Source: Hyphochytrium catenoides (lineage: Eukaryota; Protista; Hyphochytriomycota). Taken from it: a DNA stretch of 64,000 nt. Both the position numbers and the translations under genes were made by a program. Below are positions 5,641 through 64,000 of the stretch, in pieces (position 1 is the stretch's first letter; each line of letters opens with the position of its first letter). Where the stretch lies: the NCBI GenBank assembly GCA_900088475.1, contig FLMG01000355.1:310001-374000 (forward strand), written 5' to 3'. The notes beneath the pieces were generated by a model. That model was given only the letters and a program-made list of their open reading frames with translations, did no database searches and was not told where the DNA came from.

Positions 5641-8034
5641 ATGAAGATCACGCTCTTCGCTCGGGTCTTCCCTTTTCTGGCTCTTGCACTGCCAACTTCC
5701 ATTTTCTTTGCCGGTGAAGTTCATGGCGCTGTGGGACCATGGGGCAGCAATAAAATCTGGGGTCTTAACTACGACCCGCAACTACGACCAGGCGACGGGG
5801 TTCACGATTGCGGCTACAATGAGCAATCAATAGAGTCCGATCTGTGGAAGATTAAAGCTGTGACTGGCCGCTTCCGTACTTATAGTTTACTCGGATGCGA
5901 TGTGGGCCGAATATACCTGGAGAAGGCAGATAAAGTGGGGCTGAAGGTCTGGCTGGGAATGTGGGTTGGCAAAGACAACGGTGCACACATTAGGCGCGAG
6001 ATTGCTGAGCTCTCTAGATTGCTTTCGGATCCAAGGCTACGGGACATCTATTCAAGAACTGTTGAGGGTGTCATCGTTGGATCCGAGGTCCTATTCCGGG
6101 AAGACGCTACGCCAGAGCAGGTAAGGGCTATCTTCAGTAGGTGCTACAGCGCAAACTCGCCTCCAGAAGAGGAGGAATCAAGAAACAGAGAAAGAGCAAG
6201 GCCAGAAAAGGGACAAAGGCCAACTATCCATGCCAGGAGAGAAAGAGACCGGCAACAGCTGCTAAGGTGCCTGATATCTGACACTCTAATTACCCTTCCG
6301 CAGCTGACGCAGTATGTTAAGGAGTTGAGGGCCGTGGCGCGGGAGAAGGGGGTCTCTGTCACTGTGGCCAACGCTGATGTCATAACCACGGACAGCGTCA
6401 TCCAAGCGGTGTGTATGAGTCTAATACTCTGCTGCCTAGCTTGTTACTCTCCTTGCCGCTGGTCTTCTGAGCCTCATATTTATTGGCTTGAGGCTAAATG
6501 TCTGAGAGACGCTCATTGTTTTCTAACGTTCTGGTGCTCTATAGGTTGATGTCGTGATGCAGAACAACTTCCCATTTTGGGCAGGCTATAGCATTGACGG
6601 GGCTGTAGAGTCTCTCCCCACCCTCATCCGGGAAACAAGGGAGAGAGCTCAGAGGTACGGGAAGACCTACATCATCGGTGAGACTGGCTGGCCATCTCGT
6701 GGCAATCCCATGAAGCCTTCCACACCTGGCAATAAGCCCGGCATGGCTTCCCAGAATGTAAGAGATCATCTTCATGGTTTTCAGCATGAGGTATTGCCGT
6801 CAATCCGTCCACAGCACTAAGCCAAGGCCTTGCTCATTCCTTTCGCAGCGGTACCTGAATGAGTTAACCTGCCTCCTCAACCAGAAACAGATTCCTTTTC
6901 TCTACTTCCAGGCCTTCGACATGGCTTTTGATAAGACCAACAATCCTAGTAAGTGGACATACGAAGGGAGACCACAAGATGAAGTATAATTAACTAGCTC
7001 CTTAACCCTCCTCAAATATAGATGGAATCGGAGTGGATCAGCACTGGGGCATCTACAATGCTCAGCGGACTGCCATGAACTCCTGGATCCAGATTCCTAC
7101 CACGTGCGCCACACGCACACCCGCTCCAGCATGCACAATAGAGGATGGTTATGACTACATTGGGAACGATCTTGCGGAGGTTCCAGGAGGCAGCGCCGAA
7201 GTTTGTTGCGGCCTTTGCCAGGCCAGGCAGGGCTGCGAGGCCTTTGTTTGGTCCACCTACAATTCCGGCACGTGCTTTTTGAAGTCGGCAGCCGTAGAGC
7301 CCCCTGCGGACAAACCCTTCAACTACATGCTTCGAAGGGGAAAGATCTCTGCTCGATGCCCTCCATTGGAGGATAACCTAGACATTGTCGGGGGCGATGT
7401 AGGCAGTGTAAACGGAGTGAAAGATGCTGCAGAATGCTGCGCGCATTGCAACCGTTTCGCGGGATGCAAGGTCTTTACCTGGAGTGATTTCGAGGGCGGG
7501 ACCTGTTGGTTGAAGAGTGGAAGGGGACAGACAGCGTTCAAGGCTGGAGTGAAGTCAGGTGGCCGAGTGCTCTCACCTTCTGCTGGTGTCTGCAACAGTG
7601 CAGTGAAGCCGCTTGCTGGTGACTTTTCTGGCAATGATGTTGGCAGCGCCAAGAGCTCCTCGGCAGAAGGCTGCTGCGCTGTCTGTACTAGCCGCAGTGA
7701 CTGCTTCGCTTACACCTGGACAAGCTATGAGGGTGGGACGTGCTGGCTGAAAAGCGCACCTACGCTAACGCGACAGAACCCCTCAGGTGGTGCACTGTCC
7801 GCTCCTGTGTGCCCTGGAGGTGTGGAGGAGGGTGTGGACTTTGTAGGCCAAGATATTGGGTCTCGGGGTGGAGTGCCTGTGGCAGAGTACTGCTGCGGGT
7901 TGTGCAATAAGACGCCCGGATGCAGGGCCTTTACCTGGTTGTCTGGGTACCAGGGCGGGACCTGCTTCTTTAAGTCCGGCGCTAGCCAACGGGCAGCCAA
8001 CGCTCAGTGCCGCTCTGCTGTAGTGAAAAGATAG
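5641..8034 (+). CDS. Secreted GH17 beta-1,3-glucanase/transglucosylase with four C-terminal PAN/Apple (PAN_4, CBEL-type) domains
   Basis: Signal peptide. GH17 motifs FRTYS, GVIVGSEVLFR (acid/base E), IIGETGWPS (nucleophile E) and QHWGIY. Introns at about 6121-6303, 6409-6544, 6758-6848 and 6984-7022. Four repeats of D..G.D......A..CC..C....GC..F.W....GGTC.LKS. Confidence 0.92.
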
Positions 8035-23056: not shown

Positions 23057-24544
23057 ATGCCGCCAAAATCTTTAAAATACCTGCTAGGCTTGGCCCTGCT
23101 GGCGTCCACAGCTGCTGCCAATCAATCTCTCTCCTGCTTCAACTACTCTCCATTTTATCATGAAGATTACTTTAACGGAAGGGTAGCAGAACTGCTCGAC
23201 AGAGACTTCGCGACAGCCAGACGGCGTGGCATTACGTGCGTCAAGACGTTTCACACCGCATTTTTTGGCAATTCGGTCACTGATGTAGCTGCAAAGCACG
23301 GACTTAAAGTTGTACTCGGAGTTTTCATGCAGGATCCAAGCCTTCTGGGGGGGGAAGTAGACAACGCCATCAAAGCCTGCCAGCAACGTCCTGACAGTCT
23401 AATCGGTATCGTCGTGGGCAATGAGAACCTTAACGGGGGGAATCAGGGAGAGTTCTTCGCCATCATTGACAAGATCAAAGGCTCTGGCTGCAGAGTCCCC
23501 GTCGGAACAGCTCAAAAGTCCCCTACTTACCTGGACGGTACCTTCTCCAAAGAGTTTGCGGAGAAGGTGGACTTCATGGGCGTCTCTCTTTACTCTTTCT
23601 TTGGTCCTATCCCTAACCAGGAAAGACCCATCGAACCCATCAGGGGGCAATTAGATAGACTGAGAGGACTTTGGGAAGGGCAAGGGCACAAATTCAGAGC
23701 CACAGAGATTGGCTGGCCGACAGGTGGAAGCTTTGCTGGCAACGTTGGTTCCTTGGAAACTGGCCAGCGGTTTATTGATCAGATTGCAGGGCCGGTCTGT
23801 GAGGGGTATTTTGGCGATTGGATTGCCTTTTTCCAAATGTTTGATGAGCCCAACAAGCAAGGAGGGGAATTTGAGAGGCATTTCGGGCTTCTACAGCCTG
23901 ACGGCTCTAACAAGCTTAATATTGACGTCCTGATCCAGTGCTCGAAAGATGCTAATGCTGTTGCTGCTCCTCCGGCGGGGCCAGAGGCTCCTGCACGTGG
24001 TCCTCCAGCACCTGCACCTGGCCCTCCTGCACCTCCTCCAGAGCCTGCACCTACTCCTGCTCCGCCAGCTCCCACTCCTGCTCCTCCGTCCACGACTCCC
24101 ATGTATCCACTCGCTACTGATGCTCCAAAAGATTCCACTGAACCAGTGGTCGTCCAACTTCCCGGTGCTACCTTTACGCCTAGCCCTGCTGATGGTAGCG
24201 CCGAAGGCAATGAGGGCCCCGTCGGCCCGGTGAACGATGATGCAGATAATCAATTGGGCGGTGCGCAGGATGACTCTGACTATGAAGACGAAGGAGAGGA
24301 CGATGGAAGCTCTTCCCTTTCTGTGATCGGTAACGACGGCTTGTCCGGCCCAGACAACAATGTGCCCTGCCCCATTGGCCAGCTCCCGGTCTCTGTTGAG
24401 GGCATTGGGACCTTCTGTACCGCTATTCCTATCTGTGTTGGTGGGATACCTGACGGCAACTGTCCTCCTCAGCAAGCGGGTCTCCCCAATGGCGCCAGAT
24501 GTGCTATCGTGAAGACTGGGGTGGCTGGCTGTGTAAGCAACTAA
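23057..24544 (+). CDS. Secreted GH17 glucanase with Pro/Thr-rich and acidic linker and C-terminal oomycete-type Cys-rich module (intronless)
   Basis: Signal peptide. GH17 motifs GIVVGNE, ATEIGWPT, FFQMFD and ERHFGL. PAP-rich linker. C-terminus CPIGQLPVSVEGIGTFC...CVG...GNCP..Q.GLP.G..C.IVKTGV.GCV. Confidence 0.92.
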   Translation: MPPKSLKYLLGLALLASTAAANQSLSCFNYSPFYHEDYFNGRVAELLDRDFATARRRGITCVKTFHTAFFGNSVTDVAAKHGLKVVLGVFMQDPSLLGGEVDNAIKACQQRPDSLIGIVVGNENLNGGNQGEFFAIIDKIKGSGCRVPVGTAQKSPTYLDGTFSKEFAEKVDFMGVSLYSFFGPIPNQERPIEPIRGQLDRLRGLWEGQGHKFRATEIGWPTGGSFAGNVGSLETGQRFIDQIAGPVCEGYFGDWIAFFQMFDEPNKQGGEFERHFGLLQPDGSNKLNIDVLIQCSKDANAVAAPPAGPEAPARGPPAPAPGPPAPPPEPAPTPAPPAPTPAPPSTTPMYPLATDAPKDSTEPVVVQLPGATFTPSPADGSAEGNEGPVGPVNDDADNQLGGAQDDSDYEDEGEDDGSSSLSVIGNDGLSGPDNNVPCPIGQLPVSVEGIGTFCTAIPICVGGIPDGNCPPQQAGLPNGARCAIVKTGVAGCVSN

Positions 24545-56140: not shown

Positions 56141-59100
56141 TCAAAGGCTCTCGCGGACTGTCTCGCGACCCTCTTTTTCTAGACGTAGATGAGGCCGAAG
56201 GCTTGAGAGCTCTTCTAAGAAGCTCCATATCTTCACTGCTCTCGCGCCTTCCACGGGTTTGCCTTTCNNNNNNNNNNNNNNNNNNNNNCCTCCTTGTTCT
56301 TGAGGTTCTATGGGATCATCTGAAGGAGCGGATTGCCTCTTCTGTTCTGGCAGCTCTACCTGCTCACTCCTCGACAAATGAACTGCATCCCTTCTTATCT
56401 GCGACTCGATAGCTCCTTTGTATATGTCGGGTGGCAGCACCTTGCTTTCCAGGAGCAATCTTTCAAGGTTGTCCAGAGCAACTGCGCTCAACCCGGAAGA
56501 CAGTGAAGAAGTCAAGAAAGAACCAGGTGATGCCCGCGCCATCAATTCTGCCCGAAGCTCTCTCCAGTCCTTCCTGAGAAACTGGACAGTGGCTGGATGC
56601 TGGAAGAGGAGCGTCACCGACTGATGGTGGACTGTGGCCATATAAGCGCTGTTGAGCGCTTGAAAGGAAGAGAGAGCGGAGAAGAGCAGCGCAAGCAAAC
56701 GGTGAAGGGTGACTTCTGCGTCTGGACTCTCCAGAAAGATTAGCACATTCCGCAGCATGGATAACCCTTGATTTCCTACCAGACGCTTACGGCCGTCGTC
56801 CTCACTTCGCTCTGGTCTTGATCTTAGAGCCCCATCAACGTAGGAAAGAGCTTCCCAGATGACGTCTCTAGGGGTTGCGACAAGGATGTTCACAACTCTC
56901 TCCCTTGGCGTAGCCTCATTAGGACGTACCAGGCTGGATAAAACCTTCAGAAACCAGAGGGGATCCTCTCGCAGCGCTTGAAGACAACCAGCACGATAGA
57001 CAGCCACTGTAATTGGAGACAAGGCTGCCTGCCAAGTAGCTTTTTGTATTCCTTGGCTCTCAGAGGTACCAGGATTTCCGCTTGCAATCAACTCGAAGGA
57101 ACCGCCAGCCATCAGTTGAACCCAAGCTGTCATGAGTGCCGCAGGCGAGCCCTGGTACTGCAAATGACAGTACAATCTACAGATGAAGAAGTTCAAATAC
57201 CCATACTGGCTTTCTTCAGGTTCTGACGGAAGGTTCCAGTCCTCGCATTCACTTGCATGCCGCTTCAGCCATGGTTCCAATGACGGAAGCCAGAGCTGAT
57301 TGGGCCTTCGAGAAGAAGGCCAATAACTTAAAAGCGGCTGTATGACTGAGCTCTCGACCAATCGAGATCTTTCTCGTACCTTCCCGCCACTGCATAGTGC
57401 GGCCCACCACTGCTCTTCTCCTGTGTTGGCCTTCGTACGGCTAAGGAGATAAGCCTCCGTCCCTTTTGCTTCATCTTGGTGTTCCTCGTCGCTTCCCAAA
57501 CCTTCCTCAAATCTGTGTGCAATTGCTTCAATCAATGTGTGACTCCTCACTCTAGCCATCAGCACCTCATAAGCATTTTTTGCTTGCTCTCTGCTCCTAG
57601 CTGTAAGAGCCGGAAAAAGTGCTTCCGCGCAGAGCAAGCTCGCTAGACGAGGAATAATTAGCAGGTGATCCAGCTCCACATTCTCCTCATTCAGGAGCAG
57701 GAAGTCCACGTACACGATCAATAGGGACCTTGACTCCGTTTGCGCCGGAATCTTAGACAAAAAGGAGGAAGTAAATATTAGACTCCAGCTGTGACCGCGA
57801 GCTGCCATTCGCAGTAGCTTCAATAAACTCGAAGCTTTCTCTATAAAAGTTGGGTTCAAGGAAGAAGAGAGAGAAGGTGCAAGAACTGTCATCTGTTGCA
57901 GTACTTCTGCTATCATCTCGGCGTCCAAGAGGTCGTTATACTTCTCAAGTAACAATAGAAAGTCCTCTACCACTCCCGAATGAAGAGAGGGGAAGCCTAA
58001 GAGGAGAACCAGGGTCAGGTGACGGAGATCAGGTACTTTTCCTTCATCTGGCTGTAGCAAATAAAGCTTCAAGGCTGTCTCCAGCCTTAGCAAGGAAGGT
58101 CTTTTCTCTCCTACTTGGCCCAGAGAGCCTATGAAAGTAGGGTGATGAGCCAGAGCTGTTCCACTTGAGAACGCAAGTTTATCCTCGGGCAAAGAGGTGT
58201 CTGATCCCAGGCCAAGAAGCTGGAGAAGGGAGTGGGGAGGCGGGTACAGTAACGAGCCCAATGGTTTCCAACTCGATCGTTGTTCGCTGTAAAGTCGGTT
58301 TACGGTCTTTATAACACGCCTCCGGTCTCCAGCGCTGTACATTGTAGGTAAAGAGAAGAAGTATTCTCTCAGCAGTGCTACGACAGCTTCGGCTACTGGC
58401 ATTGTCTTCGGCGAGCGCGTCTGGGAGCTTTCAGTACTTAGATTCCCGTCATGGCTGCACCCATAGAGCTCTTCCAGCTCCTCTCTAGTCATTGAGCATA
58501 TCTTGAGAACCAGCTGCCGCCCATTGCCATCACTCTCTTCAAACTCGGGCTCTTCCACATATAGCTCGTCAGCAGTTCTTCCACCTTGTCCTCTATGGCC
58601 AGCTGCTCGCGTTCCACTGCTGTTTAGTGCCAACCGCGAATCAAATCGTCCGTCCACCTCCAAACCGGCGGCTTCAAACTCTCGGAAAAGTTTCTTCTCA
58701 ACCTCCGGTGGACAGAATGCCGACATCCGTAAAGTCTTTGACAAAAGGAGGAGCAGTGCGGGGACGTCTTGTGGTAGATGTGAGGGGATGAAGGGAGACA
58801 TGGGGCTAGTGCGCAGTGATGAGGGAGAGGATAGAAAAGGCGTTTCCCATTTGGCACTCTTGAGCCATTGCCGGATAACCGCTGGTGCTGTCTGGCTTAG
58901 AACTGGAAAGGTTATAGGTGAGCAGGAACAAAGAACGAGCCAGAGCTTCACGAGATAAGAAACTGAAGGCCCTTGTCTGCTATCCTGATACTTGGTTGTC
59001 ATGGGGGTTTCATTGCCCCTAAAGATAAGAGTGAACAAGAGGCAGAGCTCGTCTGCGAAAGAGACGCTGTGTTCTTCACCGAGAGAGCCCCGCGAGGACC

Positions 59101-60974
59101 TTTGAATCGTAAGGAAAAAAGAGACAAGTTGACAGGTAACGGCAGCGAGGGCAGAAGTACAAGGATATCCAGCCTCTTTCCTGCCTCTCGTACCCATCCT
59201 GCAGAGAAGATGGCAGAGCATACCCTTGCAAAGCTCCCTTCGAGACTGAATAATCGAGGAGTTCGCCACCAGATACGGGGCCATGAGAGCCTTCAGCTGT
59301 TCCAAACAGGTTTCTGCTTTGCTCTGTCGCTCTCCCTGATCATAAAGGCTGACAATTGTTGTCTCTATCTGGATAGAAAGGACAGAGAGAAGAAAGCGAC
59401 AGCAAGGAAGAACCTTTGCCTGGGGTCCAGTGGCGCTCCCTAGCTGAAGAAGAATAGCACCTAACTTAGCTTGCAAGGAAAGTATGTCCTCTCTCTCCTC
59501 ATGCCCACGAGCAGTTGTTAGGAGCCCTAATGTCTCCACAAGAACTTCGGATAGCTCGTCCTCTCCCTCTTCCTTTTCCTGACTGCTATGTTCCGTCCTA
59601 AGCAGCTCGCTCACACGTCGAAGCAATCCCAATACGTAGGCTTCCCTGCCTTCAAGCAATGGAGAGGAAGGAGATCTGGACGAGAGGAGCGTCCGGTTGA
59701 CCACAGAAAGGGCTCGACTTAGAACCTGAACAGCGCTACCGGCAAAAGGCCGTCTTGTGCCTAAATGACAACAGGTGTGCGATTTACCGTTATCTACGAA
59801 GTTTTTTGTCTCATCTGAAGCCAGGATAAGGACAGGACGGAGAAAGGAGAGGATTGGAAAAGGCAGAGGGAAAGAACGAAGAGGGATGCCAACATCTTAT
59901 GTCTATACCTCTGTTAGGACTTGCCGAGGGAGAGGTACTGCGGCTTGTTCTGCCTTCAGTGTTTGCCCCAGTCTTCCTGCCCGAGCAGCTCCGCAGCAGA
60001 TCTCCAAACCTGCGGAGCGGCCCGTCATTTTCCCTTGTCCTCAGCCTGCGGTCCAGCTCTTCATTCCCTCCTAGGAGCACCCAGCCTGCTCCGCTCTCTT
60101 GAATGAGAAGAAGGAGGTTCTGACCGCGTCCTACCTCTGCTTTTCCTCTTTCCTCATCTTTCTTCCGCCTGGAAGGCGCGAGGGTGTTATCGGTCGATGC
60201 GACCCCGCTCTCCAGCGCCCACTGACAGGCACAAGGCACTGACATATCTCTCATCTTTGCTTGGTGGACCTGCCACAGCTCAAGAAGCGTGCTCAAAGTC
60301 GACCGCAAGGCTTGCACCCTTTCTCTATCTTCCAGGCCAACCACTCCGCCTTCTTGAAGCTTGGGAGTCAATCTACAGATGGAGAGAAAGAAGCTCTTTG
60401 TGGCCGCGGAGAAGTAGACGTCCTCTCCTTCTATCCGACGAGAGTCGCCCTTTCCCCCGAGAAGAGCTTGCGATACCAGATCTAATCCAGGGCCAAGCCA
60501 CTTATGTCGCACCAGCAGGCCGAGAGAGAGTTTTTTCTCTCTTTTGTCCCTCTCCAATCGGTCCAATTCTGCCCCCAGCACCACCATCAGACTTTGGCAG
60601 CTCAGTTCGCCAGTCTGAAGGAGTCCGCCCCACTCTTCCTCTTCAACGGAGAGGATCAATCGAAGCAGTAGTTGCTTATCATGACTGGGGTCCAGGGACC
60701 TGAGGATGCTCTCCAATGAGCGGCAGAACACCTCAACAAGGACATCAGGGCTTCTGCCCCTTAGAGGCAAACCTTCCGAGCTTGGCAGTGGCGGAGCAAG
60801 TTCGTTAGCAAGGCGCTGGCGCCGCGTAAGGACCTGACTAACAGCAAATTCTTTGAGAACTGGGAACCGCTTGAGAGCCGCTGTAAGCCCTGTCCCTGCG
60901 TTGTGAGCCTCCTTACCACTGCCATCGAACTGTTGATTGACGGCACGGCGCACCAGTTGGTAGGCCCCTTCCAT
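56141..60974 (-). CDS. Large Leu-rich alpha-helical (solenoid-like) protein, tentatively FANCA-like; 3' end obscured by an N gap
   Basis: The 387- and 1187-codon ORFs can be joined through GT-AG introns around 59730-60140. Leu/Ser-rich helical composition, with weak FANCA-like segments (see findings). Confidence 0.7.
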
Positions 60975-61237
60975 ACTGTGGAGACTTCGTTATGGCATCA
61001 TCTGCTGCTTGTCAGACCCCAGACAAAGCGAGGGAGATGATGGACCAAGCCGCTGGTCTTCTCTACATCTGACCCAGCGGGCAAACAGCGGGCTTGACTT
61101 ACGCTTACGCTGTCCGCTTACCAGGAAACCTCACTGTCTTACTCACTGTCCACCTCGCTGCCATGACAGGAACCTGGTTCGTCCTCCGCTCATCCAGTGA
61201 TGTGTATCTTTCATCGTGGGCTGTCGCTCGCTCTCAG

Positions 61238-61239
<2 letters not shown>

Positions 61240-61275
<36 letters not shown>

Positions 61276-61360
61276 NNNNNNNNNNNNNNNNNNNNNNNNN
61301 NNNNNNNNNNNNNNNNNNNNNNNNNNNNNNNCTCTCTCTCTTTCTCTCTCTCTCTCTCTC
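61240..61360. repeat. (CT)n microsatellite containing an assembly gap
   Basis: CT runs flank the N run at 61276-61331. Other gaps lie at 46805-46813 and 56268-56288. Confidence 0.9.
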
Positions 61361-61850
61361 CGTCTCTTTTTATCTTCACGCTCGCATTTTCTCTTTCTCA
61401 CGGATTTTGAAGAAGTTTGAAGCTTGATGGACCTTTGAGGCTTAGGTTTAGGGAGTCTGACCTCTCTCTATCAATCTACACCTCTGAAAGGCGGCATATT
61501 ATCAGGTAAGACGCCCCCCAGGAGCCTCGTGCAGATGTTTCTGTCTGGCAGGAAGAGCGAGATCAGAAGCACGGAAATGATGAGGAAGCAGGGAGACAGA
61601 GGAGGAAGGAGAGAGAGAGAGAGAGAAGCGCCGCGAGAGGAGAGAAACGATGTCTTCATCGGCTGCGCTGGAGAGCTAAAGCCTCCGAGAGGGCAACAGA
61701 ATGGGATCGAAGTGCCGCTGTCAGGTGCGCGCAACTCTGGGCCAAGGCAAGACACTTGAGAGACAGAAGGACCAGGACTGAGGGGAAGACACAGGATGAG
61801 CTAGAGACAAAGGTAGAGGCACTCAAGAGTGTATCTGTTCATCACTTAGT

Positions 61851-63988
61851 ATGAAGCTTCCTAAAGAGGAAATCATCGCGGCAGTAGAGCAGGTAACGGA
61901 GGCAGTAGATCTCCTTCTGGCCCCACAGATTGACAACTCTTTTGACCTGTTCGATATTTCCCTGTCTCTTGGCCGGACTCTTTCTCTGCCTTCTATAGTC
62001 CCTTCTCTGACGCATGAGGAAGGCTTGATAAGTCCTAGTGTCCGCTGCTCTAAGCTTGACTTTGTCTCAACCTATTTTCACCCGACCTTATCTGTCTCCC
62101 TGCTCCCTCTGCCCTCTCTCTCTCACACACTCTCTCTCCTCTTCTTCTCCTCTTCTTCTCTCTTCTTTTCTTCCTCCTCACTTATTGTTCGCCTCTGTGT
62201 ATTAACTCAAGACTCTACGTGCGCTAAGTTTACTTCACTCAGTCTCCTTTGTTGATCTGCCGTGATAATGTCGCTGTCCTCCACATCCCGCCCCATCTCC
62301 GTCTTACACCTTTTACTAATCATCTCTGTTTCTCGCCCCCCCTTTCTCTCTCTCTTCTCTGTCTCCGCTTCTTTGCCCTTCATGCCCTCACCGACTCAGC
62401 ATGGGCCCTCTGTCACGCCCTCCAAAATCTGTCTCGCGACTGGTTTGCCCCTCAGTGAGGTTGAATATGGTAGGTAGTCAACCCTCCAGCCCTAGGCATG
62501 ATCCTTCAATGGTTCTCCCTGTCTCTCCTCATGATTCTCCAGCCCAGGGCCATTACCTCCTCTCTTGTCTCTTCTGCTTACACGCAGCTCTCCGGTCAGT
62601 CTCATCCTTCCAAACCCTCTTGTCCATACCTTGGGAGCTCATCGTCCATTTGAGACTCACTCCACACATTTTCTTGGCCGTAGAGCTCGCTATCCTTTTG
62701 AAAGAAGCTGGAGGACACTTAGAGGTAGAGAGGTTCCGCCCTGTCCCTCTGCCATCCCAAGCCCTTTCTATCACCTCTCTTCTCGCTGTCTTCCTTGTGG
62801 ACTATTAATCGTTGATTTCATACTCTGATTAGTTCTTAGCGTCTGCCCTTGTATATAACGCTCTCTAACATGTATGCAGATGACGCTGGAGGACGGTAGA
62901 GACAATGTCCTGTATATCTATCCCGCTCATCTTCGGCTCGCCCTTCAGTCCAGAAGCTGGCTTTTCAGGCTCCGTGCAGTCCTGGAGAGGTGAGGATCAT
63001 TGCTGCTCTTGGCTCCATTAGATGAGTGGAGCTGTTGCTTCTGGATATCGTAACGACGATCCTACTACTCTTTCTTCGACTCCTTATCGCTAGCTCGCTG
63101 TTTTGCTCTCTCGGGTTCCGTGCTATGCGATGTGGTCAACGAGCAGAAGAGTTGAGCCCCTCAATCGCTCTTCTTAATAGGATTCTTGGCAGCCTCTACT
63201 ACACGCTGCGGCTATCATTCGGCCTATTTCTTCTGGTCTCCCTCCTTATCGTCCTGGTGGCAGTGATTGTCGTCCTTGTTCTAGCGAGCAGCAGAAGGAG
63301 TGGCGGTTCCGATGTGGGAGGAGCAGCAATCAGAGCTGTGGGCGGACACCGGACTGACGCTATGTCAAGAGTATGTCATGGACCACTTTCGATTTCTAGT
63401 CACAGTTAAAGTGCCGTGACGGCTTGTCCCTCCCTCAGGGATTGTCGGCACAAGTCTTCTCGTTCTTCTTTCTATCTCTCTTTCGGTATACCTACTTCTA
63501 ATCTGTCTCTCATCGCACGTGTGTAGTTCCTATGTGATAGTTTGTACATCTTGTGGCATTTCGAGCACAACCCTTTCTTCGCCGTCCAAGCGGCCCCTCC
63601 GCTCCCCGTCCGAAGACGTAGAATGGCGCAGAGAGGTCCAGGAGTTGTGCAAAGAGAGTTTACCCAGCATAGAGAGACCCAGGGAGAGGAGGTAAGCCCA
63701 GGAGCTTTAGGAAACCTCGTTCCGGTAACTGCTACCTTTTCTCTGTCTCTCCACCTCTCGGCCTTGACCCTTATGTTCTTGTTCATAAGCTCCTGGGCTA
63801 TATATCTTTTCTCTTCCTCATCCAATAACGCATTCTTCCTTCGTTCTGCCATCAAGCTTGTTGGCTTTCATGCGCAGGAAAACGTCGAAGACCCACGCTC
63901 CGAGGAAGAGGCTGAAGATAGAGAAATGAACTTTCTTGAGGCAATTTTCTCATTCTTATTTGGTGATGGCCATCCCGGACCCTCGGAG
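61851..63988 (+). CDS. Homologue of the cyanobacterial/chloroplast At5g03900-type membrane protein (N-terminal wHTH-like domain, TM helix, FLFGDG.P motif); continues beyond the window
   Basis: Seven in-phase GT-AG exons (61851-61892, 62400-62469, 62684-62724, 62880-62989, 63181-63370, 63527-63691, 63878-63988) give MKLPKEEIIAAVEQHGPSVTPSKICLATGLPLSEVEYELAILLKEAGGHLEMTLEDGRDNVLYIYPAHLRLALQSRSWLFRLRAVLERILGSLYYTLRLSFGLFLLVSLLIV...EMNFLEAIFSFLFGDGHP. Confidence 0.88.
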
Positions 63989-64000
63989 GTAATGTATCTG

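Follow-up and report, generated by a model that had tools for sequence, protein, structure and literature searches.

A divergent VIA1-family gene with no visible targeting leader in the pseudofungus Hyphochytrium catenoides

The protein family of Arabidopsis At5g03900 is now named VIA1 (VIPP1-Associated protein 1), a winged-helix membrane partner of VIPP1 also known as CPLD50/VPL3 in Chlamydomonas and as VIA1 in Synechocystis. The naming is recent (2023-2026). VIA1 binds VIPP1 via its winged-helix loops and protects thylakoids, and a Chlamydomonas mutant is rescued by the orthologues from either Synechocystis or Arabidopsis (10.1101/2023.10.10.561251, 10.64898/2026.03.26.714412). Both papers on its distribution treat VIA1 as characteristic of oxygenic phototrophs (GreenCut; cyanobacteria, algae and plants), and make no mention of any plastid-free eukaryote with a VIA1 gene. 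According to a published structural comparison, the winged helices of VIA1 touch the first helices of an ESCRT-III-like protein, as Vps25, a component of ESCRT-II together with Vps22/Snf8 and Vps36, does with Vps20. No sequence relationship between VIA1 and ESCRT-II was detected in Pfam, NCBIfam or PDB sequences, and VIA1 is membrane-embedded and monomeric in models, whereas ESCRT-II is a soluble Y-shaped complex. As a working analogy, VIA1 may be regarded as a protein that resembles ESCRT-II in its way of working without belonging to it.

On the other hand, the photosynthetic ancestry of the pseudofungi is a matter of dispute, to which the genome paper of Hyphochytrium catenoides contributed four plastid-derived candidates: a PAS-histidine kinase, a cytidylyltransferase, a conserved hypothetical protein and a haem oxygenase. 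No plastid genome was found in that work, in keeping with the non-photosynthetic pseudofungal host that a first-pass annotation of the present DNA had proposed. The VIA1-family gene described here bears on the same question through the same type of evidence, a nuclear gene of algal or bacterial affinity. However, none of the four candidates has Archaeplastida orthologues with predicted plastid-targeting peptides (0 of 4), and one of them goes weakly with cyanobacteria, whereas the plant and algal orthologues of VIA1 are genuine membrane proteins of the chloroplast and, among prokaryotes, it is restricted to Cyanobacteriota. This gene was thus apparently missed by the published genome screen.

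The gene lies at the end of the window, by which we mean the whole 64,000-nt stretch of DNA analysed, and spans positions 61851-63988 of the + strand. Its parts are as follows:

60975 to 61850, + strand: upstream intergenic region, with (CT)n repeats, a 56-N gap and an acceptor-like tract.
61851 to 61892, + strand: exon 1, 42 nt, codons 1-14, with the ATG start and the onset of the first winged helix, WH1 (..IIAAVEQ).
62400 to 62469, + strand: exon 2, 70 nt, WH1 helices (..VT..GL..).
62684 to 62724, + strand: exon 3, 41 nt, ..LAILLKEAGGHLE, followed by a phase-0 intron.
62880 to 62989, + strand: exon 4, 110 nt, with the beta-hairpin loop of WH1 (LEDGRDN), the ..YIYP.. block and a helix that leads on to the first transmembrane helix, TM1.
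63181 to 63370, + strand: exon 5, 190 nt, the Y..RLSFG block, TM1 and the onset of a variable linker.
63527 to 63691, + strand: exon 6, 165 nt, a weakly hydrophobic stretch that is conserved (..DSLYILWHFEHNPFF..), plus a charged linker specific to the host.
63878 to 63988, + strand: exon 7, 111 nt, an acidic linker and the family signature MNFLEAIFSFLFGDG, with a GTAATG donor next.
Within 61893 to 63877, + strand: six introns of 507, 214, 155, 191, 156 and 186 nt, all GT..AG and pyrimidine-rich, the sixth being in frame and free of stops.

All seven short GT-AG exons of the first-pass annotation were recovered, each bounded by AG and GT, and they chain in phase (0,0,1,0,2,0,0) to 729 nt, that is, 243 codons with zero stops, where the track of open reading frames offers fragments only. 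The predicted junctions are supported by homology, canonical splice sites and the distribution of SNPs, the reads being those of three DNA runs, one from 2017 and two from a single 2011 sample; three very small runs under the same species label contained no match. This set of runs and the allelic bubbles agree with the design of the H. catenoides project and with the diploidy of that organism. A GT donor follows position 63988 and the window ends at 64000, so the gene runs off its edge and the C-terminal half is absent from it. One assembled contig, X1, extends 132 nt beyond 63999. The sequence evidence confirms this gene model of a seven-exon VIA1-like gene as real, far beyond chance.

Database queries were made with cyanobacterial or algal relatives, and the spliced window protein was compared against local sequence sets. 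Against a profile of 13 cyanobacterial sequences it reaches 109.3 bits (E 1.7e-26 at Z = 1.8e9), and at 28-32% identity its residues 4-242 align with residues ~8-215 of cyanobacterial proteins (small local databases, E 1e-27 to 4e-30). BLASTP gave up to 111 bits, with 32% identity over residues 7-242. These results bear out the At5g03900-family membership first proposed from four sequence blocks, all of which are present in the spliced protein. The homology to the N-terminal half of VIA1 is collinear from the first Met, every one of the seven exons contributing to it, and the protein is identical at 23 of the 30 columns conserved in at least 80% of 67 cyanobacterial and eukaryotic homologues. 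The signature [MNSG]F[LF]E[AS].FS[FY].FGDG.P is found at residues 223-241 (MNFLEAIFSFLFGDGHPGP), and the 14 residues at its core match the most frequent cyanobacterial form exactly. When N-F-L-E-A-[IVM]-F-S-F-L-F-G-D-G was used as a degenerate DNA pattern, at least 120 prokaryotic genome loci matched; among the matches listed, the titles were those of cyanobacteria, save one contig under the label Acetobacteraceae and a few unnamed bins of the type "uncultured bacterium".

In the sequence alignment, the putative WH1 region (residues 4-88) matches its relatives without large gaps and keeps the positions AVE, VT, GL, L..L, GG.L, G and Y.(F/Y)P. One strong hydrophobic segment at about residues 99-123, with 19-residue Kyte-Doolittle windows of up to 3.6, points to a transmembrane helix after WH1. 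It is followed by the stretch ..DSLYILWHFEHNPFF.., which aligns with the cyanobacterial ..PDLFWFFNPNPY.. and corresponds to the weakly hydrophobic stretch after TM1 of VIA1 orthologues described in a 2026 preprint (10.64898/2026.03.26.714412). The same preprint reports mutant data by which A171/S172/G173, in the WH1 hairpin loop of the Chlamydomonas protein, are needed for VIPP1 binding. The window loop LEDGRDN, which keeps the Gly and has an insertion of 2-3 residues relative to its relatives, would be the counterpart of these residues and of the cyanobacterial ..AESGE.., as inferred from the alignment. No Pfam family was found on the exon pieces, no NCBIfam on the relatives and no match among PDB sequences. 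By its sequence, the window gene is a divergent VIA1 member, whose N-terminal half comprises a predicted WH1, one transmembrane helix, the weakly hydrophobic stretch and the NFLEAIFSFLFGDG signature.

In its layout it follows the known VIA1 proteins (WH1, TM1, weakly hydrophobic stretch and the NFLEA.FSF.FGDG signature, in this order), with most of the invariant residues kept. On the other hand, the window protein is only 25-32% identical to any member and sits on a very long branch, its linker between TM1 and the signature has about 100 residues instead of the 45-75 of its relatives, and its WH1 hairpin loop carries the insertion mentioned above. The WH2 and the second and third transmembrane helices of known members would lie beyond position 64000; the gene is assumed to be intact and full-length, with WH2 and these last two helices in that part. 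A further difference lies in the host, which is probably free of both plastids and thylakoids.

VIA1 relatives were also found in metagenome-assembled genomes of the non-photosynthetic Candidatus Obscuribacterales, in the thylakoid-less Gloeobacterales and in the non-photosynthetic diatom Nitzschia sp. Nitz4, the Gloeobacter VIA1 having been recorded as well in 10.1101/2023.10.10.561251. The cyanobacterial or plastid-type character first attributed to the family holds in that its range is essentially Cyanobacteriota plus plastids, but the Obscuribacterales and Gloeobacterales copies mean that VIA1 is not a strict marker of thylakoids or photosynthesis. Since the family persists in these two groups and in Nitz4 without thylakoids or without photosynthesis, a non-thylakoid role is plausible for the window VIA1. 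However, these organisms keep a bacterial inner membrane or a plastid envelope and the window host seems to have neither, and the window protein falls outside the Obscuribacterales clade in trees.

Regarding its origin, the best BLAST matches of the spliced protein among 402 family proteins are cyanobacterial. With leave-one-out profiles of equal span, it scores 138.4 bits against the cyanobacterial profile and 120.3 bits against that of plastid eukaryotes, whereas all nine eukaryote controls (9/9) favour the plastid-eukaryote profile, by 21-100 bits. Two signature positions, A228 and L233, show the cyanobacterial state, and the ochrophyte signature states (GFLES..FSY/V.FGDG) are absent. In phylogenetic trees the window protein, which covers 43% of the columns, forms a long branch (1.9-2.4), and its placement, at the border between cyanobacteria and eukaryotes, is weak: a careful tree without constraints puts it basal to the plastid eukaryotes (89/78), a constrained tree with plastid eukaryotes monophyletic to its exclusion is 4 lnL better than the free one, a quick tree rich in cyanobacteria places it among crown cyanobacteria, and a eukaryote-only tree leaves it in the root region beside Cyanophora (96/87), outside the green (100/99) and red-lineage (99/95) clades. 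In none of the three trees does it group with ochrophytes or the red lineage, the red-algal/ochrophyte clade excluding it at 98/89 and 99/95, but the AU test does not reject its union with the complex-plastid clade (delta lnL 7.6, p 0.38). An N-terminal "LP.E" likeness to red-lineage proteins was discarded, as this region is too variable. Searches around the best eukaryotic match, P0170 from an uncultured ochrophyte, returned only ochrophyte and cyanobacterial names; no close relatives appeared in JGI metagenome contigs searched with exons 5 and 6. Neither search showed a relative from pseudofungi or other heterotrophs. Nor was VIA1 found in the IMG/VR viral contigs, where a possible viral vector was sought.

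The introns give a different hint. Intron 3 (phase 0) coincides in exact position and phase with introns of Protea, Guillardia and Chrysoparadoxa (a plant, a cryptophyte and an ochrophyte, respectively), whereas the positions of the other five of the six are unshared. The identity of intron 3 favours a eukaryotic donor; alternatively, it could reflect a parallel gain at a conserved AG|R site, with a chance of 0.8-14%.

In our reading of these sequence data, the gene would have been acquired long ago and colonised by introns, and would now work outside a plastid, with an origin that leans away from an ochrophyte-plastid relic. The explanation that best combines the evidence, and which we hold to be probable, is a selectively maintained nuclear gene of the VIA1 family, taken up in the distant past from a cyanobacterium (an alga being the less likely donor), leaderless as assembled, and serving a non-plastid membrane. 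After the transfer, the gene would have gained spliceosomal introns, adopted the composition of the host and evolved fast. An old, intron-colonised horizontal transfer repurposed outside the plastid was one of the two origins initially put forward, and it is the one that fits the trees and the profiles better, even if intron 3 would favour a donor other than a bacterium.

The closest competitor would be that a eukaryotic alga, perhaps a prey organism or a primary alga on a deep branch, donated the gene by horizontal transfer and that the targeting leader was lost later. This scenario would account for the intron shared by three distant algal and plant lineages, for the sister position to Cyanophora in the eukaryote-only tree and for the basal position to eukaryotes in the free one. 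Nevertheless, we consider it rather unlikely: in the pairing with Cyanophora, the two basal branches of greatest length come together where the root attaches, as is typical of long branches; cyanobacterial states are favoured by BLAST and by the profile test; 5 of 6 introns are unshared; and the start Met corresponds to the bacterial start, so that a fortuitous new ATG would be needed at the mature N-terminus.

The other origin initially put forward, a relic of endosymbiotic transfer, would require that pseudofungi and ochrophytes descend from a shared ancestor with a red-type plastid, the gene being kept after the loss of the plastid and its bipartite leader shed. The otherwise plastid or cyanobacterial range of the family, the intron common to an ochrophyte, a cryptophyte and a plant, and the eukaryotic side taken by the window protein in the free tree are all in line with such a relic, and the AU test tolerates the grouping it predicts. 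However, no tree joins the protein to ochrophytes or the red lineage, its signature lacks the ochrophyte states and, contrary to every eukaryote control, its match to the cyanobacterial profile is 18 bits better; the lack of pseudofungal or other heterotroph relatives in the searches above also counts against it, which together make a relic quite unlikely. Moreover, one gene is insufficient for such a claim, the published genome screen having yielded only four candidates, all of them weak, with the question judged inconclusive by its authors.

The N-terminus of the protein is another point to be addressed. In the alignment, the window Met and the start Met of cyanobacterial proteins are at most one residue apart, in agreement with the earlier observation that the MKLP start sits where cyanobacterial proteins begin. 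There is an in-frame stop 18 codons 5′ of the ATG with no intervening ATG, and the net charge of the N-terminus is 0. Eukaryotic VIA1 proteins have 60-130 extra N-terminal residues, such as the leader of about 95 residues in Nannochloropsis, with a classic signal peptide and an SWA|F motif, whereas the window protein has no transit peptide or bipartite leader visible in the assembled sequence, as had been noticed from the start. A divergent minus-strand ORF starts at 60974, leaving ~877 bp up to the VIA1 ATG, and among all ATG-to-GT upstream exons in these assembled 877 bp that fit two possible acceptors there was no hydrophobic signal-like candidate. On the other hand, this interval contains an assembly gap of 56 N (61276-61331) flanked by (CT)n, 520 nt 5′ of the ATG, and an acceptor-like polypyrimidine tract with an AG (..ctgttcatcacttag) immediately before the ATG, both of which allow for a possible upstream leader exon. 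If such an exon lay in the gap or farther upstream, the protein could be targeted to an organelle, either a cryptic plastid-derived compartment or a plastid proper should the host not be plastid-free, and several algal VIA1 models in databases also lack a leader, owing to truncation. We regard this as very unlikely, given that no candidate exon has a hydrophobic signal core, that the divergent ORF leaves so little room, and that the authors of the genome paper, having found no plastid genome, consider the organism plastid-free.

The gene also behaves as a host gene under constraint. Its coding sequence has a GC content of 0.53 and a GC3 of 0.56, both within the values shown by seven further long ORFs of the window, and paired allelic contigs with similar depth carry on from the flanks into the gene. 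Allelic differences fall mainly in introns (26 of 29), only three being exonic, although exons make up 34% of the span (binomial p 0.0035); these three SNPs are all non-synonymous. The composition, the intron sizes, the depth with paired alleles and the mainly intronic SNPs indicate a selected host gene rather than contamination. An artefact (contamination by algal or cyanobacterial DNA, exons that chain by chance, or a pseudogene in decay) might be suspected from the truncation by the window, the long branch and the three non-synonymous SNPs (3/3), but is scarcely credible and was ruled out, given a gene embedded in a 64-kb host window with matching composition, depth and paired alleles, six spliceosomal introns, 243 stop-free codons, E 2e-26, 23 of 30 invariant columns kept and too few SNPs in the exons (p 0.0035). 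A GH17-like ORF was observed elsewhere in the same window; a protein search with it gave one weak match, which did not place the host.

A last question is what a VIA1 protein would do in a heterotrophic stramenopile, and here the role, localisation and partner that we propose are a matter of pure inference by analogy. The ancestral bacterial Met start, the lack of a signal or transit peptide and the plastid-free host lead us to propose insertion into a non-plastid membrane, where the first helix would act as a signal anchor and leave the winged-helix domain facing the cytosol. The biochemical role of the family would be kept, that of a membrane-anchored winged-helix adaptor that recruits a protein of the ESCRT-III superfamily. 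The recruit would be either a PspA/VIPP1 homologue kept by the host or its native ESCRT-III in the cytosol, ESCRT-III proteins being distant kin of VIPP1/PspA. Such recruitment would serve membrane maintenance under stress. The altered WH1 hairpin loop, the counterpart of which matters for VIPP1 binding, speaks against this proposal. In its most daring and still doubtful version, a plastid-free eukaryote would have captured the cyanobacterial VIA1 adaptor for a membrane of its own (ER-derived, vacuolar or mitochondrial), the winged helices engaging the host ESCRT-III. If true, a bacterial "ESCRT-II-like" part would have been plugged into the eukaryotic ESCRT system, and the core activity of VIA1 would be general membrane repair, not thylakoid biogenesis.

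With prokaryotic relatives only in Cyanobacteriota and algal orthologues that are true plastid proteins, VIA1 offers a clean test gene for the disputed photosynthetic ancestry of pseudofungi. The sequence evidence leans to an independent horizontal acquisition, which, if upheld, would count against the gene being a relic, although a single gene cannot decide the dispute either way. In any case, a conserved and apparently leaderless VIA1 in a heterotrophic stramenopile constitutes a natural experiment on the non-thylakoid role of the family and, together with the copies of Obscuribacterales, Gloeobacterales and the colourless diatom, argues for a role of the winged-helix/ESCRT-III-like module beyond thylakoids.

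The spliced gene that the first-pass annotation had proposed at the end of the window, where the mechanical ORF list indeed offers only fragments, was confirmed at the level of the DNA: scripted splicing of 61001-64000 joins the seven predicted exons, with canonical GT-AG sites, in phase into 729 nt, or 243 stop-free codons.

Predicted exons of the VIA1-like gene
61851-61892, + strand: exon 1, starting at the Met, no AG before, GT after
62400-62469, + strand: exon 2, AG before, GT after
62684-62724, + strand: exon 3, AG before, GT after
62880-62989, + strand: exon 4, AG before, GT after
63181-63370, + strand: exon 5, AG before, GT after
63527-63691, + strand: exon 6, AG before, GT after
63878-63988, + strand: exon 7, AG before, GTAATG donor after

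The donor after exon 7, together with the window end at 64000, indicates that the gene is cut by the window; a contig of the DNA sequencing run X1 extends 132 nt further. The introns (155-507 nt) are AT-richer than the coding sequence. In the published genome, a gene has ~3.6 introns on average, and the mean intron length is 208 bp (H. catenoides genome paper). Intron 6 (63692-63877; 186 nt, 62 codons) has no in-frame stop, so that an open frame extends from 63527 as far as the end of the window, and its retention would add a partly hydrophobic 62-residue segment ahead of the family signature, N-F-L-E-A-[IVM]-F-S-F-L-F-G-D-G. This segment was treated as an intron because it carries 7 SNPs between alleles and its inclusion would make a long linker longer still.

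Contamination, a chance chain of exons or a pseudogene are very unlikely, given a coding composition (GC 0.53, GC3 0.56) that falls within the values of seven further long ORFs in the window, X1 contigs with paired alleles and a depth equal to the flanks, and a deficit of exonic SNPs. Of 29 allelic differences in 61851-63988, 26 fall in introns and three in exons (R83H, N208S, V209I), which make up 34% of the span (binomial p 0.0035); the gene is conserved under selection. Throughout 60900-64000, X1 contains two haplotypes, each at about half depth. They differ by clustered SNPs and by small indels (6 nt missing at 61098 and 1 nt at 63003, one base inserted at 62674), a pattern that fits a diploid, heterozygous genome. 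The locus is present in three DNA runs of one organism, one dating from 2017 and two from a single 2011 sample. The published genome, sequenced on one HiSeq lane and two GAIIx lanes, was described as diploid, with large-DNA-virus insertions and two rhodopsin genes with adjacent identifiers (H. catenoides genome paper).

Other features of the window
7033-8034, + strand: ORF with four PAN/Apple domains (PAN_4, E 8e-35)
23057-24544, + strand: ATG ORF of 495 residues; its C-terminal match to Glyco_hydro_17 is weak (E 1e-8), and 5.8 billion proteins include essentially no relative (best E 6.6e-7) and no self match
56141-59704 and 59811-60974, - strand: very long open frames of 1187 and 387 residues, without Pfam match, probably one gene with an intron of ~100 nt between them

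The exon pieces gave no Pfam match, and no Pfam, NCBIfam or PDB entry was found for the VIA1 family itself. The Arabidopsis At5g03900 product, to whose family the gene had been ascribed, is now named VIA1 (VIPP1-Associated protein 1; CPLD50/VPL3 in Chlamydomonas), a membrane protein that has three helices and two winged-helix domains and is a binding partner of the ESCRT-III-like VIPP1. Thylakoids depend on VIA1 for their integrity at high light, and the protein is conserved across cyanobacteria, algae and plants (10.1101/2023.10.10.561251; 10.64898/2026.03.26.714412, hereafter the VIA1 preprints). A degenerate DNA pattern for the signature, searched in a prokaryotic genome collection, retrieved at least 120 loci, all with cyanobacterial titles except for a few 'uncultured bacterium' bins and one Acetobacteraceae contig. 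The latter (L070, CAZZZY010000355.1, binned as 'uncultured Acetobacteraceae bacterium') has a typical cyanobacterial VIA1 gene and is probably mis-binned cyanobacterial sequence. Complete ORFs at these loci (n=104) have 420-465 residues, with the motif near residue 175-200. Residues 4-242 of the window protein are collinear with them at 28-32% identity, its score against the cyanobacterial profile is 109 bits (E 1.7e-26, scaled to 1.8 billion targets), and it is identical in 23 of the 30 columns that are at least 80% conserved among 67 cyanobacterial and eukaryotic relatives. The assignment to the VIA1 family is secure. According to the collinear alignment, the window holds the predicted first winged-helix domain (WH1), the first transmembrane helix (about residues 99-123), a weakly hydrophobic stretch and the signature, with WH2 and the last two helices expected outside.

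An exhaustive profile search for the VIA1 family returned 2382 clusters at E <= 1e-3, and the matches listed include Cyanophora, a land plant, the red algae Bangiopsis, Cyanidium and Galdieria, as well as Guillardia, Vitrella, Eutreptiella, Nannochloropsis, Chrysoparadoxa, Tribonema, Ectocarpus and diatoms. Members also occur in the non-photosynthetic diatom Nitzschia sp. Nitz4 (P0247), in Gloeobacterales (P0293) and Thermostichales, and in a well-supported clade (P0222, P0296, P0251 and relatives; FastTree local support 100) whose named members are MAGs of Candidatus Obscuribacterales, non-photosynthetic Cyanobacteriota. The Obscuribacterales and Nitz4 occurrences are absent from both VIA1 preprints. 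That Obscuribacterales, Gloeobacterales and also a colourless diatom have VIA1 shows that its retention does not depend on thylakoids. No oomycete or other plastid-free eukaryote was named among the best 120-150 matches of each list, obtained with relatives as queries, and neither JGI metagenomes nor viral contigs, scanned at exon level, yielded a relative.

The cyanobacterial start and the Met at 61851 coincide to within one residue (M.PNP.IM..VEQ versus MKLPKEEIIAAVEQ), as first proposed, and the apparent lack of a plastid-targeting leader also holds in the assembled sequence. Upstream, the frame runs for 17 codons to a stop without an ATG, and 877 bp separate the gene from the divergent minus-strand ORF starting at 60974. 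The tract before the ATG (..ctgttcatcacttag) resembles a good acceptor. Every upstream ATG-to-GT exon in the 877 bp, joinable to either of two possible acceptors (the AG at 61848-61849 or that inside codon 2), was enumerated, and all encode peptides that are either rich in Arg/Glu or only weakly hydrophobic, in no case with the core of a signal peptide. The promoter region shared by both genes contains a (CT)n/(TC)n microsatellite (61229-61373) flanking a 56-N assembly gap (61276-61331), with (CT)n on both sides, which no X1 contig crosses. In eukaryotic relatives homology begins 60-130 residues in, whereas in the window protein it begins at the start, and Nannochloropsis VIA1 carries a textbook signal peptide leading into SWA|F, with no visible counterpart here. 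A leaderless protein acting outside a plastid is the probable reading of the sequence.

With regard to origin, the window protein forms a long branch, with 25-32% identity to all relatives. FastTree (152 rows) places it on the branch that joins cyanobacteria to plastid eukaryotes (support 41/74), and IQ-TREE LG+C20 PMSF (68 rows) as sister to all plastid eukaryotes but Cyanophora (89/78) and not within the green and red crown (98/89); a constrained tree with plastid eukaryotes monophyletic without it lies 4 lnL above the free tree (p 0.56). A quick tree of many cyanobacteria and five eukaryotes puts it within the polytomy of crown cyanobacteria (SH-aLRT 82). Its best BLAST matches and the states of signature positions 228 and 233 lean cyanobacterial, as does a leave-one-out profile comparison over the same span (138.4 bits with the cyanobacterial versus 120.3 with the plastid-eukaryote profile), in which 9/9 control eukaryotes preferred their own profile by 21-100 bits and 5/5 cyanobacteria theirs by 2-39 bits. 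Direct transfer from a cyanobacterium has about an even chance of being the correct origin.

An algal donor, which these cyanobacterial leanings make rather unlikely, would draw on intron 3, whose position (phase 0, after ..GG.L(E/Q)) leans eukaryotic. Exons mapped from genomic loci of five relatives reveal this WH1 intron at exactly the same position in the cryptophyte Guillardia, the land plant Protea and the ochrophyte Chrysoparadoxa (L121, L124, L125) and its absence in Vitrella; none of the other five window introns is shared. It falls on a conserved AG|R proto-splice site, with a chance match of 0.8% (any site) to 14% (AG|R only), so that the intron either is ancient or was inserted there repeatedly. 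The relic of endosymbiotic transfer first suggested is not favoured, and an ochrophyte-type plastid relic seems unlikely: an AU test did not reject a clade with complex-plastid lineages (delta lnL 7.6, p 0.38), but the eukaryote-only tree pairs the protein with Cyanophora near the root (96/87), apart from the green (100/99) and red-lineage (99/95) clades. In the H. catenoides genome paper, a plastid genome was not found, and the candidates for plastid-derived genes, all weak, numbered only four; the Archaeplastida orthologues of these are without plastid-targeting peptides, so that VIA1 is not among them.

A last question is what a WH1, a signal-anchor-like helix and the signature could do outside a plastid. 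Winged-helix loops of VIA1 bind the N-terminal helices of VIPP1, its loss causes thylakoid swelling under high light, and in Chlamydomonas its cyanobacterial and plant orthologues can replace one another (VIA1 preprints). Without a leader, the first helix of the window protein would act as a signal anchor in a non-plastid membrane, leaving WH1 in the cytosol, where it could recruit an ESCRT-III-superfamily protein to that membrane; both the alteration of the WH1 loop and the length of the branch would fit a changed partner.
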